Source: Trichoplax adhaerens (Eukaryota; Animalia; Placozoa). From it: a stretch of DNA of 7,031 nt. The stretch spans positions 1 through 7,031 of the forward strand of contig NW_002061259.1 in NCBI RefSeq assembly GCF_000150275.1, written 5' to 3'. A program made the translations under genes and the position numbers. Every line of letters begins with the position of its first letter. Position 1 is the stretch's first letter. The notes beneath the pieces are model-generated. The model searched no databases and was not told the origin of the DNA. It was given only the letters and a program-made list of their open reading frames with translations. Below, in pieces: positions 1 through 7,031 of the stretch.

Positions 1-192
1 TGAGGATGATGAAGTTTCAGGAAGAGCATTGTCGATTTTACGTCAAATGTAGTAAATGTAGTGAACAGATACCCATAGTCAAAGAATACAAAAAAGAAGA
101 TGAAAATTTGATTCGATGCCAACATTGTAAAAACGTACTTTCTAGTCAATCTCTGAACGATTGGATAATTTATAAGGAAGAGCTATGGAACG
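1..192 (+). CDS. Coding exon (5'-truncated by window) with CxxC-x19-CxxC; resembles the Cys-rich C-terminal end of invertebrate COR (Roco-type) domains or a zinc ribbon
   Basis: Open frame RMMKFQEEHCRFYVKCSKCSEQIPIVKEYKKEDENLIRCQHCKNVLSSQSLNDWIIYKEELWN, with Cys codons at 48, 57, 117 and 126. Good donor CG|GTAAGG at 193 (phase 1). The hydrophobic ORF tail 193-308 is read as intron read-through. The COR assignment is by motif impression only. Confidence 0.65.
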
Positions 193-876
193 GTAAGGAT
201 GTGAAAGCAATTCTTGGCTTGATTGTTGTTGCTATCATTATTTCCGTCAAAATAGTGTGTTTTGACAAAATTTCTGCATTAGTATTCTTTAAGCTAAATT
301 TTCAATAATTATGATTGGAGTTTCTATTCTATTCAACCATTATCTAAATCTCATCTTAGAATACCGTATAGTAAAAGCATTGATATAATAAAGCAGAATG
401 ATTTGCTAAAACAGTTAACGAGACGAGAATGCATGCTATCTTTTAGGTAAATTTGCATATTACTCTACCTTGGCATAATATTCAACAATTAGTTAGCTGC
501 AATAATATTTTCTGATTTTGTATATTTTTGTTACTGAAAATGTATTATGGATTGCAATATTTCAAAATGAATACTTCATCTACTGCATTTCATTTGTGTA
601 GTAAATAGAAACGGCTGGATTTTATTTATCGCTGCTTCCTATAGTATTTTGTTTTTTAACGTTAGTACACGATAAGTCATTAATATTGAACTGTTTAATA
701 GCCAATTAGTTTCATCGTCTTATGCAGCGTATAGAAATTAATATAGATAGCATTCCCTGCGTATAAAAACACCTAAAAGGATAAAGGGAGAAAACTATCT
801 TCGTAAACTCTTTAGAGAAACATGTCATATATTTCACTTGCATGGCTGCAAATCTATCATCTATTTTAAAATAATT

Positions 877-976
877 ACGATAGGGCTACTAATTGATTAT
901 TCCTATTTTCACCTCATTTCTTTAGAGAAAAAGATATATAGAGAAGATAAAGGTGAGCCTCCACTGAATTGATATC
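877..976 (+). repeat. Direct repeat 1, copy 1 (microexon plus intron flanks)
   Basis: Ungapped alignment to 4381-4480 (offset 3504), about 75/100 identities by hand count. Confidence 0.85.
926..952 (+). CDS. 27-nt symmetric (phase 1-1) microexon, (E)KKIYREDK
   Basis: Branch-like TACTAAT at 887-893, polypyrimidine tract and TTTAG acceptor (AG 924-925), strong donor AAG|GTGAGC at 953. A paralogous copy with conserved splice signals lies at 4430-4456. Confidence 0.75.
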
Positions 977-1311
977 ACACAAGTACTACCAAAGCGTAAA
1001 AAGCCAAATTCTGTTCAGTAAAATGTGTTTTGTAATAGTCTTCTTTGAATTAAAGTATATTTTTCAATAAGTTCTCACACTCTGTATTTTTAAAGAGAAT
1101 AGCTTGCAGTTAGTATAACAACATTGAGTTAAGTAAATCACACTATATTACAATCATTTAAGCCAAAAGAGTACGTACTTTTAACGTTTAACGATGTTAT
1201 AATACTTTATAAAAATGTTGAGCGCTTGCATGCATAGTAGCGAATGAGATTATACTTTGTTTCTTTAATGGCTGATGATACTGTATCTTTGTAATGTCGA
1301 TTCAACTCTAG

Positions 1312-1428
1312 AACAAGAATCAGACGAAACTGAGAAACTCAATGCTAGTTGTGCACCCGGAATTCGATTTGAAGTCTCTGTCGATTCTAATAAAACTGTT
1401 GAGATAGAAATGGACGAACCCAATTCTT
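1312..1428 (+). CDS. 117-nt symmetric exon, acidic linker EQESDETEKLNASCAPGIRFEVSVDSNKTVEIEMDEPNS
   Basis: Acceptor CTCTAG ending 1311, consensus donor GTAAGT at 1429, open phase 1-1 frame, higher GC than flanks. Confidence 0.75.
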
Positions 1429-1717
1429 GTAAGTTGTACTGTGGCTAACATTTTTTTACTATTTTAAGTGACAATACAGTAAAATCTATCGCATACTACA
1501 ATAGCAGCGACTTACCTGATTTGTAAGATGGAGTCATTTAATTGGTTTGTATAGCAAGCGCTTTCAACAATTGCAACTTAGAAAGAGGAATATTCTTGAT
1601 TTAGTGTAGAGAGAATCGTTCATTCTTGCTACATTCAATTTTCTATTAACTGTTTCATATGATGTACCGTAAGTAGCCGCTGATCCTATTTTTGCAAATA
1701 AAATAAAATTATTGTAG

Positions 1718-1963
1718 CTGCCAAGGAGTATAACAGCAAAATCGCAAAAGATATTGGAACGGAGCGGAAAACTTTGGCAAGAGAATTTGGAATTGATCAA
1801 CGCGACATCGACAAAATTATAGCTGAAAATAATGGATCAGTTGACGATCAATGTGCGCAAATGTTGAGTATGTATGCGAGTAGGAAAGGTCGGAGTTACA
1901 CAAAGAGAGCATTAGTTGAAGCACTCTTTAAAAGCGGGCTGCGCTCTGTAGCTGAAGATCATT
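1718..1963 (+). CDS. Death domain exon (DD-A), 246 nt, phase 1-1
   Basis: SAKEYNSKIAKDIGTERKTLAREFGIDQRDIDKIIAENNGSVDDQCAQMLSMYASRKGRSYTKRALVEALFKSGLRSVAEDH follows the death-domain pattern (IA..IG..wK.LAR.lG....I..I.......dQ...ML..w....G...T...L..AL...Gl..vA). Acceptor TTGTAG ends 1717; donor GTATGT at 1964. Confidence 0.9.
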
Positions 1964-1971
1964 GTATGTGT
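1801..1971 (+). repeat. Direct repeat 2, copy 1 (DD-A 3' part and donor)
   Basis: 3 mismatches in 171 nt versus 5711-5881 (offset 3910). Confidence 0.97.
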
Positions 1972-2026
1972 CTAAGTTATGCAATGTTTATTTACCTTTT
2001 TAGAGGATCGAATCGTTAGCAGTATT

Positions 2027-2252
2027 ATTATTTTAGTGAACATACTTTCTAGATATGGGAGTTAACAGTAAACTTTATAGACGTCGATATTTTTATACCT
2101 TTGATATTTATAAATTTGCTAACTTGTGCTTAAAACTGTATACGAGTATTTTCAAAAGTTGCATTTATTACGGTACATCTACTGTATTCCGCAATAAGAA
2201 TTTTGTTAAAATTCTTACAAAGCTAACTGAAATTTTTCTTTAGTTTTATCAT
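2027..2252 (+). repeat. Direct repeat 3, copy 1 (intronic)
   Basis: Ungapped match to 6806-7031 (offset 4779). 13 mismatches counted over 2033-2252, about 94% identity. Confidence 0.97.
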
Positions 2253-2396
2253 TTTGGATTTAAAGTATTAAGAGAGATAAGAACAATAGTGATATTTACA
2301 GTTAAAATTTGGCATTAAAATTAAAAGGAGAAACATTGAATTGTCAGTCATAGGTTCTGTCGATTAAACTTTTTTATTTTCACGTCATTCTTAAAG

Positions 2397-2465
2397 CTGC
2401 CGAGCCATTGCAAAATCTAAAGAAAGATGACGAACTATCTAATAGCGCTGACCGAGAAATCCAAG
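2397..2465 (+). CDS. 69-nt symmetric linker exon SAEPLQNLKKDDELSNSADREIQ, putative GC donor
   Basis: T-rich tract then TTAAAG acceptor ending 2396, open phase-1 frame with higher GC, ends CAAG|GCATGT followed by very AT-rich sequence. Confidence 0.55.
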
Positions 2466-2859
2466 GCATGTTTATTGATAGATAATATAAAAATATATAA
2501 ATATAAACATAGAATATTTGCAATGATGATATCTATGGTGTAATTTATATCGCTTAATTTATTTTGTTAAGTGAAGGGATGTTATGTATGTAAGAATACA
2601 GTAACCTGTTTTACTGCACCTAACGTGTTAGCATAAGTTAAGGTATAATACGTCATTACGGCTATACTATTTAAATGCAGTAAATCCTAAATAAAAGAGA
2701 CTTTTAGTAAGCTTACTAGGAGGAGTGTATCAAAGTCTCTCGTGCTTACGTTAACGACTAAGAGTGGAAACACAACGGATAACAGCTGCTTTAATATAAG
2801 AAAAGTGAATGGCTGAACATGTTGTTGTTATTAATGTTCTTCTATTACTTTTGAGCCAG

Positions 2860-2931
2860 ATAATAATCTTAGATCAGGAAAAAGAAAGAAGAATCCAGCG
2901 AAATGTCATTTATTTCCAGGAATGCATCCAG
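2860..2931 (+). CDS. 72-nt symmetric linker exon DNNLRSGKRKKNPAKCHLFPGMHP
   Basis: Pyrimidine tract 2837-2852, CCAG acceptor ending 2859, donor CAG|GTTAAT at 2932. Phase 1-1 matches the phase required by the next exon. Confidence 0.55.
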
Positions 2932-3180
2932 GTTAATTTTGTTTTGATTGGAGATAGGAGTGTAGTTTTCGACGGTATCTTTCTATCCACAAATTTTTCT
3001 CTCTAAATTGTAGTCCCATTATGTAATGACAGAGCTATTCTATTTATTAGTGCATTAAAATCGAAGAGTACTTTTAACTAGAAGAAACACAGGCATAGGA
3101 GAACATTTCTTGTCATTGACAGTACTTTCTAAATCATCAATTTCATTTCTATTCTTATATAACGTCAACTATCGCAACAG

Positions 3181-4136
3181 CCAAAGCTGGCTATCCAAAG
3201 GTATCGAATAACTGCCAAGTTAATCAAGATCATGATTTAACCTTGCCTGAAGTACCTGGATTAAAATTTCATCTTCCAGCTCAGTGTATAACAACTGAGG
3301 CCACCCTAACCATGACTGTATACTATGCAGATCCACCTTATAATCAAGGTTTACCAATTCAGAAAGATTCTGATGGTAACCGCTTTATCCAGTTATCGCC
3401 AATCGTTCGCCTCGAGCCGGATGGGTATCAATTTACCCCTAATAGCACAAGGAAAGCTTTACTTCAAGTCCCCGTTCCATATATCAACCAGATAGTTTCA
3501 CTTAAGAAAAACAACAACTTTAATATCCCAATAAAGATCATTTGTCGAAGCTACGGATGTGAGAAGTGGGAACAGCAAGATATAGAGTATGAATATAGCC
3601 GCGATAAAAATGGATATTATTGCCTTACTTTTGCAGTAAGCCATTTCTCTGAATATGCCGTCATTTCCCGCGTCAAATCTTTCATTTATTCAGCCTTCAA
3701 GTATATCTTGCCATCTAGGCAGCAACGAATTAAAACGTTAGCTTTCCTATCCGAAATAGACACAAGTGATGATACTGTCCATATGAAATTAATCTTAGCT
3801 AAAAAAGATGTAGATGAAACTGCTATCTTGTCAGATTTTCATCAGGAAGTTATTAGGATACGTTTAGTTACGACTGGACTTGAAAATACTATTCTAAAAA
3901 ATGGTGATTACGAAGCTAAATTTAAGGAAGACGGTTTAGATTGTCCGAATGCTGATTTAAATAATCGGATAATTACTATCAATTGGAATGAGTATAGCTA
4001 TCATGCTATCGATTACGCTTGCAAGGTTATCAAAAAAGCAGCTATTAATATAGCTCAAATCTCTCTAAAGCTTAAAGACCCGAAGCGAGACACCAAGGCA
4101 AAGATTTGCTACTTGCGCAGATCAAATTCCAACAAG
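3181..4136 (+). CDS. Large exon encoding a PIDD/UNC5/ankyrin-type ZU5 domain (~3181-3670, with HFS motif) followed by a probable UPA-like beta domain (~3720-4120)
   Basis: The 304-aa ORF extends in frame up to acceptor CAACAG at 3180 (phase 1). ZU5 hallmarks are GLKFHLPAQCI, LSPIVRLEPDGYQF, LLQVPVP, KWEQ and FAVSHFSEYAVI. Donor AAG|GTAAAT at 4137 (phase 0); read-through would stop at 4155-4157. The UPA call is positional and based on alternating hydrophobic strands. Confidence 0.85.
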
Positions 4137-4241
4137 GTAAATGAACAACATCTATAATCAATCTTCAAGTTGTGAAGTATATAGACTCTGTTTAATTTAC
4201 TAAGTAAAGTTTGTCATGTTTGGCGGCCCAACCCATCAAAG

Positions 4242-4302
4242 CATACAGATACAGAAAAGCTGCCTGTTCTACCCACTAAAGAGCATTCAGCATCACCAGA
4301 TG
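4242..4302 (+). CDS. Short linker exon HTDTEKLPVLPTKEHSASPD (phase 0 to 1); 5' boundary uncertain
   Basis: GC-richer open frame ending at donor GATG|GTAATT (4303). AAG ending 4241 is the first phase-0-compatible AG. Together with 3181-4136 it totals 1017 nt, restoring phase 1. Confidence 0.45.
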
Positions 4303-4380
4303 GTAATTTTGTAATAGCGTAAACAATAGTTGATTATTATCAAACATTATGGGCACTAATTTACTGTATTGATTACTTAA

Positions 4381-4480
4381 ACGATACAACTACTAATCGA
4401 TTGTGGCTATTTTTATTCCACTACTTTAGACCAAAGGAAAGATACCAAAGATAAAGGTAAACCTCTATTGAATTGATATC
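4381..4480 (+). repeat. Direct repeat 1, copy 2
   Basis: Matches 877-976, including TACTAAT, CTTTAG, AAGATAAAGGT and TGAATTGATATC. Confidence 0.85.
4430..4456 (+). CDS. 27-nt symmetric microexon (D)QRKDTKDK, paralog of 926-952
   Basis: TACTAAT at 4391-4397, CTTTAG acceptor ending 4429, donor AAG|GTAAAC at 4457. Confidence 0.7.
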
Positions 4481-5089
4481 TATCAATCATTCTCAATTGC
4501 ATTTAGTAATCCAATTGTAGATCGATTCAAATATGATTAAGAGCAATTACTCCGTGTAAATTCTAACATAGGAATACCTTACCTCGTCAATGGATGTAAT
4601 TCTTTAAGCTACGTTTGCCACTGATGATATGATCGCATACAGTTTTACTAGATAATGATATCACTGACGAATTTTTAAGATCGTCATTAGAATATTTAGC
4701 TACTAGTAAGCTACTTTTAAGCTTTTTTTTACGTTTTTTATTCATAGATATAGTAATTAATTTGCCCATTTAATCATAATAGTGACCAGAAGTGATTATT
4801 ATGTATGATATTATCGCACAAAGTTCTGTTAGCTAATTAGAATGCCAGCGAATATTTCAGATTATAATTAGAACATATAAACTACTACTCCACTACTTTA
4901 CTTGCGAGTATCCAACAATAAGTAAAATGAATTAGGTTAAATTAAAACAAATGTATCCACATTTAAATTATTGAGTCATATTGATAGCACACAGCTGGGT
5001 ATGCGGGTTCGGCTAGTCCATGATAAGATAATTTCAATTTGTAATTTTAAGATAACGTATGTGGTAATATGTTCATTCGTGCCTTATAG

Positions 5090-5266
5090 ATCCTAGAAAC
5101 TATTTTCACTCCATCGCTAGTTGTGTTGGTGTAGACTGGATAAAATTAGCTATAGTACTAGATCCAATGATTGATACTGAGGATATCGAAGCAAAACATC
5201 GTGGTCATACCTATAACAGTGCCATCCAATCGCTTAATCAGTGGTACAGAAAGAAATACCCAAATG
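5090..5266 (+). CDS. Death domain exon (DD-B), 3'-truncated by assembly gap
   Basis: Acceptor TTATAG ending 5089 (phase 1). DPRNYFHSIASCVGVDWIKLAIVLDPMIDTEDIEAKHRGHTYNSAIQSLNQWYRKKYPN contains both conserved death-domain Trp residues (5137, 5242). Confidence 0.85.
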
Positions 5267-5710
5267 NNNNNNNNNNNNNNNNNNNNNNNNNNNNNNNNNN
5301 NNNNNNNNNNNNNNNNNNNNNNNNNNNNNNNNNNNNNNNNNNNNNNNNNNNNNNNNNNNNNNNNNNNNNNNNNNNNNNNNNNNNNNNNNNNNNNNNNNNN
5401 NNNNNNNNNNNNNNNNNNNNNNNNNNNNNNNNNNNNNNNNNNNNNNNNNNNNNNNNNNNNNNNNNNNNNNNNNNNNNNNNNNNNNNNNNNNNNNNNNNNN
5501 NNNNNNNNNNNNNNNNNNNNNNNNNNNNNNNNNNNNNNNNNNNNNNNNNNNNNNNNNNNNNNNNNNNNNNNNNNNNNNNNNNNNNNNNNNNNNNNNNNNN
5601 NNNNNNNNNNNNNNNNNNNNNNNNNNNNNNNNNNNNNNNNNNNNNNNNNNNNNNNNNNNNNNNNNNNNNNNNNNNNNNNNNNNNNNNNNNNNNNNNNNNN
5701 NNNNNNNNNN
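5267..5710. other. Assembly gap (444 N)
   Basis: Run of N. Confidence 1.
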
Positions 5711-5873
5711 GGCGACATCGATAAAATTATAGCTGAAAATAATGGATCAGTTGACGATCAATGTGCGCAAATGTTGAGTATGTATGCGAGTAGGAAAGGT
5801 CGGAGTTACACAAAGAGAGCATTAGTTGAAGTACTCTTTAAAAGCGGGCTGCGCTCTGTAGCTGAAGATCATT
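5711..5873 (+). CDS. Second copy of death domain A exon (DD-A'), 5'-truncated by gap
   Basis: DIDKIIAENNGSVDDQCAQMLSMYASRKGRSYTKRALVEVLFKSGLRSVAEDH, with the same donor GTATGT at 5874. Confidence 0.85.
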
Positions 5874-5881
5874 GTATGTGT
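5711..5881 (+). repeat. Direct repeat 2, copy 2
   Basis: Differs from 1801-1971 only at 5711, 5722 and 5832. Confidence 0.97.
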
Positions 5882-6046
5882 AAAGTTGTTTCTACATGTA
5901 AAAATTTAAAAAGGAAAGCCAATGCTGTAAAAGAAGATGGTAAGCTTTTATGCTATAAACAGAAAGTGTTTATCAAGATTTTCTTCTCATTATTTACACA
6001 ATTTATGATAAACGAATTTTCATGGACTATTTTTAATTTACTGTAG

Positions 6047-6087
6047 ATACGATAGCGTATCTCAAGCGTAACACGACAAGACTCTGA
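6047..6087 (+). CDS. Candidate terminal coding exon YTIAYLKRNTTRL*
   Basis: T-rich tract and CTGTAG acceptor ending 6046, phase-1 frame to TGA 6085-6087, AATAAA at 6197-6202. Confidence 0.4.
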
Positions 6088-6196
6088 TTTCATATTAAAC
6101 TTTGCGTTATAACCCAAATCAGTTTTTTAGCGACGATTATCACCATCTATATCTCCGCAAAGATACTAATAGGGTATACTACTGGTGAAAGGTTGA

Positions 6197-6202
6197 AATA
6201 AA
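6197..6202 (+). promoter_or_regulatory. Candidate polyadenylation signal AATAAA
   Basis: Hexamer about 110 nt after the candidate stop. This is weak evidence in AT-rich DNA. Confidence 0.25.
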
Positions 6203-6805
6203 TAGTTTAATAGAAAATAGATTCATTACTTTGGACCATAAATCCTATAATAATACTATAGATATTACAGAGGAGCGTTAGATGTCATAAAGTAACGTAA
6301 GATATACTAACACTGCAACTATTGCAACTATCTAGATCTGAGGTAGATACGAGTATTAGCCGTATTTGTTAGCTTTAGAGATGTAGTCAATGTAGAAGGT
6401 AATATTGATTGTAAAATCAAATTCAACGTAGATGATAATAGTTCATGTGGTGTTAGACGATTGCAAAAAACATGATATACTAACAGAATCCAACAAATAT
6501 TCTGTCTTGAAAAAATTTAAAATCATATCAATTTTCATTCAATTACTTGACTAGAAATTTTCTCAAAATTTTTTATTGATTTACTGTACATATTCCTTGT
6601 TTGAATGTTCAAGTTCGCATTTTACATCCTAAATCGGACCGTGACTATACTGTGTTAATTGCACATAATTATTTAAACTTAGGAATGGGATCAAACAATT
6701 CTAAATGTTACCAACCATAATTAAGATACATAGCATTTACGTAGTACGATGAATAGTACATAGTCTAACATACTAGGCAATATATTAAAAAAAATTCACT
6801 GCTAG

Positions 6806-7031
6806 ATTATCTTAGTGAATATACTTTCTAGATATGGGAGTTCACAGTAAACTTTATAGATGTCGATATATTTATACCTTTGATATTTATAAATTTGCTA
6901 ACTTGTACTAAAAACTGTACACGAGTATTTTTAAGAGTTGCATTTATTACGGTACATTTGCTGTATTCCGCAATAAGAATTTTGTTAAAACTCTTACAAA
7001 GCTAACTGAAATTTTTCTTTAGTTTTATTAT
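6806..7031 (+). repeat. Direct repeat 3, copy 2 (runs off window end)
   Basis: Matches 2027-2252. Confidence 0.97.

Follow-up and report, generated by a model that had tools for sequence, protein, structure and literature searches.

A placozoan-specific ZU5-UPA death-fold family and its probable partial members on a short scaffold of Trichoplax adhaerens

The stretch of DNA analysed here (the window) takes in all of C1098 from Trichoplax adhaerens, an unplaced and poorly assembled scaffold of 7,031 nucleotides (nt) with a G+C content of about 31% and a single run of N. The element in question is a series of exons that place death domains (DDs) around a ZU5-UPA unit. We consider it probable that the window holds the 3' two-thirds of one member of a multi-copy, placozoan-specific death-fold signalling family and, after it, the beginning of a second one. 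The widest architecture that we find defensible for such a member is (Roc-COR-zinc ribbon)-DD-ZU5-UPA-DD, with two DDs. In genomic order, the gene would run from the Roc-COR tail with its zinc ribbon (the Cys4 exon) through an acidic mini-exon (ex2), an upstream death domain (DD1), a basic mini-exon, the ZU5-UPA exon with an HFS motif, a linker and a downstream death domain (DD2) to a stop codon that would lie inside the assembly gap. A first-pass annotation had joined a Cys4/COR-like segment, one DD, ZU5(HFS), UPA and two further DDs in a single protein. Its COR-like Cys4 segment, DD1, ZU5-UPA(HFS) and DD2 stood, while its third DD in one protein did not. The triple-DD architecture is an artefact, and what is left is a variant of the ZU5-UPA-DD theme within the published, rapidly shuffling placozoan ROCO/death-fold repertoire.

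Searches were done exon by exon or with proteins from public databases, and the genome that was searched for copies comprised 105.6 Mb in 1,414 contigs (designated below by C and a number). The protein of the largest frame is 100% identical to the public T. adhaerens model TRIADDRAFT_62714, a one-DD protein that uses ex2 and a cryptic DD1 donor and ends at 4155-4157. Scanning the window for Rfam families, tRNAs and tandem repeats gave nothing.

The ZU5-UPA exon and its HFS junction

The ZU5-UPA exon lies in an uninterrupted frame of 345 codons (3120-4154), which, when left unspliced, meets a stop at 4155-4157. Pfam gave no ZU5 match (PF00791, E values up to 1) for this exon and six close relatives, and no UPA, UPA_2 or FIIND match for the exon of the window. 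The Pfam ZU5 model does match more distant members of the family. A single-sequence phmmer search against PDB returned just a BRO1 match at 0.0067, which was judged spurious, and a word-based protein search with the ZU5-UPA sequence found seven placozoan proteins only. Since the family scans left the ZU5-UPA protein open, an exhaustive phmmer search was run. This search gave 50 matches, in which placozoan paralogues down to 23-40% identity were followed by LRR-ZU5-ZU5-DD proteins, one of them from the annelid Owenia fusiformis, that aligned on their second ZU5 and the start of their UPA. A family profile built from 31 sequences matched the ZU5-ZU5-UPA-DD region of ankyrin-2 at 1e-6, from the second ZU5 into the UPA.

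In order to obtain a confident AlphaFold model, distant relatives had to be included in the alignment. The predicted local distance difference test score (pLDDT) was 38 with an alignment of 7 sequences and 89.2 with one of 31 sequences, the latter with a predicted template modelling score of 0.84. Foldseek ranked ankyrin-B (4D8O, 1.7e-11) ahead of UNC5b (3G5B, 7.9e-9), the FIIND of rat NLRP1 (7CRW, 1.4e-5) and CARD8 (7JN7). With VIA-align, the ZU5 half (model residues 1-163) superposed on the ankyrin ZU5 3F59 with Z 13.3 and a root-mean-square deviation of 2.8 Å over 138 aligned residues, and the UPA half (residues 178-316) on the CARD8 UPA 7JN7_C with Z 9.9 and 3.0 Å over 119. Superposition of the whole tandem gave Z 13.8 with 4D8O and Z 10.2 with 3G5B. 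An independent language-model search placed ZU5, UPA and FIIND as the nearest clusters. Judging from the modelled fold, the ZU5-UPA unit predicted at 3181-4136 is real.

The HFS motif is invariant in 7 close relatives and present in 18 of the 28 aligned family members; 7 others have HFT, HFC or HFA in its place. In the model it sits between the last ZU5 strand (E146-152) and the first UPA strand (E157-164). The ZU5(HFS)-UPA reading was therefore borne out by the family profile, the AlphaFold model, the fold matches and the conservation of HFS. In the profile searches, which the first-pass annotation had named as a test, Pfam Death matched DD1, the family profile matched ankyrin-2, and Pfam ZU5 gave no match to this exon.

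The ZU5 half (residues 1-165) also superposed on subdomain B of GAIN, with Z 10.1 for BAI3 (4DLO) and further matches to CD97 and latrophilin. GAIN is another self-cleaving beta-sandwich.

Death domains around the ZU5-UPA exon

The presence of a death domain upstream of ZU5-UPA was confirmed, with DD1 matching Pfam Death (PF00531) at 41.0 bits and E 2.1e-10 (window 1702-2016; cut-off 22.6 bits). Its best PDB matches are weak and are to the DDs of PIDD and ankyrin. The mini-exon ex2 is kept at 63-100% protein identity beside DD1 in 10 loci, and the basic mini-exon was found in the paralogue models P0003, P0004 and P0008. The order DD1, mini-exon, ZU5-UPA, linker recurs on C976 and in model P0004 of Trichoplax sp. 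H2 (hereafter H2).

On the downstream side, the fragment of DD2 that lies in the window (58 codons) has no Pfam match by itself, the rest of its exon being in the gap. Complete paralogous DD2 exons that are 92-95% identical to it reach 27.4-31.6 bits with Pfam Death, against the same cut-off of 22.6. DD2 is 84-95% identical to paralogous exons, all of which end in a stop, and H2 model P0005 ends there as well. The best PDB match of DD2 is the DD of ankyrin-1. The order mini-exon, ZU5-UPA, linker, DD2 recurs on C1295 and on H2 contig NOWV01000704.1. The linker joins UPA to the terminal DD in models P0002-P0006 and P0008, and ZU5-UPA-DD in one polypeptide is seen in paralogue models P0005, P0006 and P0008. 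An open frame at 4633-4770 had at first been read as part of DD2. This was rejected, as the H2 model and tblastn put DD2 wholly from 5090 onwards, and the frame is a conserved intron or an unused segment.

The DD frame beyond the gap (5711-5939) matches Pfam Death at 24.5 bits, and 5712-5881 is a 99% DNA copy of 1802-1971, that is, of DD1. The whole of 5711-5939 is 93-97% identical to DD1 exons on C991, C976, C1383, C1333 and C1414, but the acceptor and 29 codons at the start of the exon are missing. The scaffold ends in 226 nt (6806-7031) that repeat 2027-2252 at 94% identity, which means that a second unit leading from DD1 to ZU5-UPA continues past the scaffold end. In all 6 of 6 paralogous loci the DD2 exon has a stop 26 codons past the point that corresponds to the gap edge, and some 26 codons of DD2 and a stop are accordingly to be expected inside the gap of the window. 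No DD1 was found after DD2 within about 4 kb on C1295, C1375 and C1404. The gap-free H2 contig NOWV01000704.1 carries mini-exon, ZU5-UPA, linker, DD2 and stop, and its next 1.9 kb have no similarity to the window.

These results can be set against the three-DD model, in which one transcript would encode Cys4/COR-like - DD - ZU5 - UPA - DD - DD with the two downstream DDs as a true tandem. The frame after the gap is open and does encode a death domain, and a join through phase-compatible introns is formally possible. Tandem DD-DD arrangements occur in other Trichoplax models as well, for example TrispH2_011687, where the second DD-like stretch is a matter of reading. However, the coding frames differ across the nominal gap (position modulo 3 is 1 for DD2 and 2 for the DD after the gap), and 444 N are too short for the tail of DD2 (81 nt) together with ex2, its intron and the missing 5' part of DD1 (492 nt). 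Together with the truncation of the exon, the DD2 stops and the absence of DD1 after DD2 in the four other loci, this makes the three-DD model very improbable. Because the DD after the gap is a DD1 copy followed by DD1's own intron, because DD2 stops, because the frames do not match and because no DD1 lies downstream elsewhere, we assign it to another unit: by sequence comparison it is the DD1 exon of a tandem neighbour, or of a unit brought in by a mate-pair mis-join in a repeated family. Three DDs in one protein were not borne out, and the second downstream DD belongs to a different unit, beyond the expected stop of DD2. For annotation, a caution follows: the triple-DD appearance stems from a scaffold join within a recently duplicated family.

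The H2 protein TrispH2_011687 (314 aa) has a partial TIR and a DD1 cassette whose DD1 is 80% identical to that of C976. After DD1 we read a possible second DD-like stretch and a putative hydrophobic C-terminal tail. A TIR-containing gene of H2 thus shares the DD1 exon.

Table 1 Features of the 7,031-nt window. Positions are those of the window; strand and remarks as found in the analysis.
Feature	Positions	Strand	Remarks
Cys4 tail, last 63 codons of Roc-COR exon	3-192	+	CxxC at 48-56 and 117-128; donor GT 193-194, phase 1
Intron segment, direct repeat	877-976	+	100 nt; 75% copy at 4381-4480; brackets DD1-ZU5-UPA block
Acidic mini-exon (ex2)	1312-1428	+	Phase 1-1; AG 1310-1311, GTAAGT 1429-1434; in public model TRIADDRAFT_62714
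DD1 death-domain exon	1718-1971 (to 1963 with cryptic donor)	+	Phase 1; Pfam PF00531
Basic mini-exon DNNLRSGKRKKNPAKCHLFPGMHP	2860-2931	+	Phase 1-1; alternative acceptor 2876-2877; links DD1 to ZU5 in paralogue models
ZU5-UPA, single exon	3181-4136	+	ZU5 about 3181-3650, UPA about 3651-4130; donor GTAAAT 4137; phase 1 to phase 0
HFS motif	3642-3650	+	ZU5/UPA junction; position of self-cleavage site in PIDD1, NLRP1 and CARD8
Damaged 3' splice site	4225-4226	+	GG; AG in four paralogues; directly before linker exon
Pro-rich linker exon PNPSKHTDTEKLPVLPTKEHSASPD	4227-4302	+	Phase 0 to phase 1; donor GTAATT 4303
Intron segment	4302-4715	+	99-100% identical to first intron of Roc-COR-Cys4-DD gene, C1404:928.9-929.3 kb
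DD2, first 59 codons of terminal DD exon	5090-5266	+	AG 5088-5089, phase 1; cut by gap
Assembly gap	5267-5710		444 N, estimated length
Supposed third DD, 5'-truncated DD1 exon of second unit with canonical tail	5711-5939	+	Donor GTAAGC 5940, phase 1
Intron following DD1 in other copies	5940-7031	+	About 925 nt as after DD1 on C976, C991, C1383 and C1414

The Roco exon, the mosaic and the state of this copy

Roc and COR are encoded outside the window, upstream of where the scaffold begins, and their presence was read from an identical copy. The Cys4 exon is identical to C1404:968292-968480, where the frame stays open for 767 codons upstream. In the 595-aa part of the C1404 exon that was read, Roc scored 30.6 bits and COR-A 43 bits, both above the Pfam cut-offs. 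The guess that the first exon is Cys4/COR-like was therefore right in substance. Pfam matches of the Cys4 exon to zinc ribbons were all below threshold. About 30 paralogous Roc-COR-Cys4 exons or tails exist in the genome, and the similarity of the Cys4 exon to them ends at 204-209, just beyond the donor. For this reason we rejected the reading of the exon through its donor, by which a hydrophobic tail with a stop at 306-308 would have given the protein a tail-anchored look; AT-rich intron often translates as hydrophobic sequence, and such a read-through was not trusted.

The relatives of the Cys4 exon are published placozoan ROCO genes that end in a DD (TRIADDRAFT_63591, TRIADDRAFT_61412) or a CARD (TRIADDRAFT_62404). 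The Trichoplax ROCO family with its DD, CARD and TPR partners has been described, with no mention of ZU5 or UPA for this family (Civiero et al. 2014, PMC4104024). Members of the family usually have a TPR exon followed by the Roc-COR-Cys4 exon, which is spliced straight to a terminal DD exon (three loci; models TRIADDRAFT_63591, TRIADDRAFT_61412, TrispH2_008488 and TrispH2_010193).

The window is a mosaic. Positions 1-1976 are 100% identical to C1404:966510-968485, 2027-4351 are 98% identical to C976, and 4521-5266 are 97.5% identical to C1375 at 200 kb; the intron segment from 4302 completes the series (Table 1). Within the linker-to-DD2 intron, 241 nt (4352-4592) are absent from the C1295 and H2 copies and 100% identical to C1404:929035-929295. 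Position 976/979 is a breakpoint, since the block downstream of it has more than 7 further copies that start exactly at 979, and the block 979-4351 has sharp ends that are common to other copies. Positions 1-976 and 4302-4715 match the opposite ends of the one intron found in a Roc-COR-Cys4-DD gene, and the repeats 877-976 and 4381-4480 are both pieces of the Cys4-to-DD intron of the Roco family. The DD1-ZU5-UPA block, to judge from these alignments, looks as if it had been inserted into that intron or had recombined within it. We rejected the idea that a dispersed repeat element lies at the breakpoints 976/979 and 4351/4381, as these segments have just 6-11 copies, all specific to the family. 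An extra exon of the public model (856-957) was not adopted, as it lies within the 877-976 intron repeat. The mosaic fits three readings alike, namely insertion of the block into a Roco intron, gene conversion among paralogues and a chimeric assembly.

The arrangement of the intron ends bears directly on a reading with two nested or adjacent genes. By this, a Roc-COR-Cys4-DD2 Roco gene would have an intron that hosts a separate ex2-DD1-ZU5-UPA unit ending at 4157, and the Roco transcript would skip that unit. Direct splicing of Roc-COR-Cys4 to a terminal DD is the common type in the family, the segments flanking the sharp-ended block are the ends of just this intron, and an inner unit that is ended by the acceptor lesion described below and the stop at 4155-4157 would agree with the public model. 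Nevertheless, an inner gene has no evident promoter or start codon, ex2 begins in phase 1 with no in-frame ATG exon found upstream, and in paralogues the linker does join UPA to a DD. We regard two genes as quite unlikely.

Several points weigh against the two-DD architecture as the product of this particular copy. The link from the Roc-COR exon to ex2 and DD1 comes from adjacency, phase and the automatic model alone. Roc-COR stands next to ex2-DD1 only in the window and its 100% identical C1404 twin, while elsewhere the ex2-DD1 cassette follows TPR exons or a TIR exon. Compared with the second copy in the window, C976 and C1404, DD1 lacks its canonical 3' tail of about 20 codons, its donor and some 870 nt of intron. 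A unique junction of 55 nt replaces them, and it is here, too, that the C1404 twin runs out in sequence of low quality. The sole donor offered to DD1 is the cryptic GTATGT at 1964 taken by the public model. In the alignment, the linker acceptor is CGG in the window and CAG in C976, C1295, C1414 and C1404, and the nearest AGs upstream of the linker yield a stop or the wrong frame. With this acceptor lost, the frame runs to the stop at 4155-4157, the end of the public model. The orthologous ZU5-UPA exons of C1295 and H2, which differ from each other by only 2 synonymous changes, each have one in-frame stop (TAG in C1295), and H2 model P0005 matches the ZU5-UPA query of the window in three stretches instead of one. 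In-frame stops in relatives indicate that part of the family is decaying. We found no public gene model that holds DD1, ZU5-UPA and DD2 together, for which short contigs are mostly to blame. Finally, the segments of the contig are 97.5-100% identical to four loci with junctions in shared sequence, as in a possible assembly chimera.

In view of the two damaged splice signals, this copy may give just the one-DD protein of the public model, and it is doubtful, as we read the exons, that the TRIADDRAFT_62714 locus makes the full multi-domain protein. Of the structure first proposed, a DD exon on each side of ZU5-UPA is present, but the link to DD2 in this copy is put in doubt by the CGG. Termination at 4157, which had been listed as refuting a single gene, is what the automatic public model shows. 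The phase compatibility of the exons stood as an observation, all junctions being phase 1 except for the phase-0 pair of UPA donor and linker acceptor. It is no evidence of a single transcript, because any exon combination in this family stays in frame.

The same lesions could mean that there is no functional multi-domain gene here at all, the window being made of mis-joined Sanger reads or a pseudogene, with only the family-level architecture meaningful. In favour of this are the near-identity of segments to C1404 (at two places 37 kb apart), C976 and C1375 with overlaps in shared sequence, segment lengths on the scale of reads, and the end of the C1404 twin in low-quality sequence at the very same point (1976). 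The GG acceptor, the deleted DD1 donor, the gap and the premature stops in related copies would suit a chimera or a decaying copy. On the other hand, the ZU5-UPA frame of 317 codons is intact and has no identical twin elsewhere in the genome, which marks it as a distinct copy. Both cassette orders, DD1 to ZU5-UPA and ZU5-UPA to DD2, are seen again on independent contigs of two species, and recent gene conversion among tandem paralogues would produce the same mosaic. A chimera or decaying copy is possible, if unlikely, and we prefer to read the scaffold as parts of two family members.

On C1404, a piece at 965364-966331 on the opposite strand, between two assembly gaps, combines a COR-tail/Cys4 segment (37-50% identical) with a DD2-like one (47%). 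It falls where the C1404 copy should have its intron between DD1 and ZU5, which suggests that the scaffold is jumbled or that a Roco-DD gene is nested there.

The cassette family, known relatives and a possible mechanism

ZU5-UPA exons number at least 26 in the genome, and some of them contain stops; DD2-like exons number about 43. Public models of the family are annotated just as 'Death domain-containing' or 'Nephrocystin-3'. Upstream of the ZU5-UPA-linker cassette we found DD1 (C976, H2 P0004, the window), TPR (C1295, P0012, TRIADDRAFT_54880, TrispH2_009717) or a long disordered region (TRIADDRAFT_54879), and downstream of it the type of terminal DD varies (P0005, P0006, P0008). By comparison of these loci, the family appears as a set of exchangeable phase-1 exon cassettes: TPR; Roc-COR-Cys4; acidic mini-exon with DD1; basic mini-exon with ZU5-UPA and Pro-rich linker; and a terminal DD of several types. 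In Trichoplax, a large ZU5-UPA(HFS)-DD cassette family, combined with TPR, Roco, TIR and an extra DD, has thus been overlooked by standard domain models.

In order to locate variation within the unit, we compared the window and C976 lineage with the C1295 and C1414 lineage. About 46 of the 52 amino-acid differences fall in the UPA half, after HFS. The ratio of nonsynonymous to synonymous differences per site (pN/pS) is 2.6-3.2 for the UPA half (3651-4133; Fisher p 0.002-0.009) versus 0.4-0.6 for the ZU5 half, and the adjoining intron is 97-98% identical. This suggests that the UPA half may be under diversifying selection. Against it, the signal comes from four sequences in two lineages, effectively one branch, and from a simple counting method in an AT-rich genome. 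The variability would fit a surface that governs self-assembly specific to each paralogue, or else one that pathogens target.

Among known proteins, the nearest sequence kin of the ZU5-UPA unit outside placozoans are PIDD-like LRR-ZU5-ZU5-DD proteins. PIDD1 shares with the window family H-F-S at the ZU5/UPA junction and a C-terminal DD. The window family differs from it in having no LRRs (in the window and the upstream C1404 exon, which were scanned), one ZU5 only, an extra DD upstream of ZU5, and a Roco tail, TPR or disordered region as N-terminal partner. It is also multi-copy, with a hypervariable UPA, and is missed by the Pfam ZU5 and UPA models. The FIIND of NLRP1 and CARD8 resembles it in its single ZU5-UPA with an F/S-type junction directly upstream of a death-fold effector. 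The UPA half of the window superposes on the CARD8 UPA and the rat NLRP1 FIIND, and, as in those proteins, an NTPase-type sensor would lie upstream in a fast-evolving immune-type family. The placozoan effector, however, is a DD and not a CARD, and its NTPase, provided that the fusion is genuine, belongs to the Roc-COR GTPases and is no NACHT. Ankyrins and UNC5 give the best fold and profile matches overall and have the same ZU5-UPA-DD order, but they are single-copy cytoskeletal or guidance proteins with other N-terminal parts, no HFS and no self-cleavage. With the Trichoplax ROCO family the window shares the Cys4 exon, whose identical C1404 copy has Roc and COR-A, and, in DD2, the usual terminal exon; it differs by the DD1-ZU5-UPA block between the Roco exon and the terminal DD. 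DAPK1 also has Roc-COR-DD, with a kinase and ankyrin repeats and without ZU5-UPA.

In vertebrates, self-cleaving ZU5-UPA modules that are coupled to death-fold domains set off the NLRP1 and CARD8 inflammasomes and the PIDDosome. Self-cleavage of ZU5-UPA of the PIDD1/NLRP1/CARD8 type is established (D'Osualdo 2011, PMC3210808). For the window, we infer from motif and fold only that the unit might cut itself between F and S of HFS; a point against this is that ankyrin and UNC5 share the fold yet do not cleave. After such a cut, the N-terminal sensor part (Roco GTPase, TPR or DD1, with ZU5) would stay non-covalently bound to the UPA-DD fragment. Once released, UPA-DD would oligomerise through UPA, and the freed terminal DD could nucleate a DD assembly that recruits DD or CARD adaptors and caspases. 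Our tentative proposal, which we hold to be unlikely, is of a placozoan Roco-GTPase counterpart of the inflammasome and PIDDosome: a TPR/Roc-COR sensor fused through a zinc ribbon and an extra DD to a self-cleaving ZU5-UPA-DD cassette, present in more than 25 copies, shuffled in phase 1 among sensors, and with a diversifying oligomerisation surface on UPA. If self-cleavage were true, sensing of the 'functional degradation' type would extend to one of the animal lineages that branched off earliest, and the published placozoan ROCO repertoire would gain an extra effector class.

Two further family members have unusual layouts. TrispH2_009717 (1,876 aa) has TPR, about 1,100 low-complexity residues, ZU5-UPA at 1441-1728 and a helical C-terminus of about 100 residues, with Pfam matches to TPR only. 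The C-terminus reads like a putative CARD or DD, and the layout would then be FIIND-CARD-like. On C1414, two ZU5-UPA exons lie 3 kb apart (12.555-12.559 Mb), both 36% identical to the exon of the window and with identical match statistics. Model TRIADDRAFT_52770 (718 aa) is built on both and contains two ZU5-UPA units identical in sequence. The pair reflects a tandem duplication that is very recent, or else one made in the assembly.

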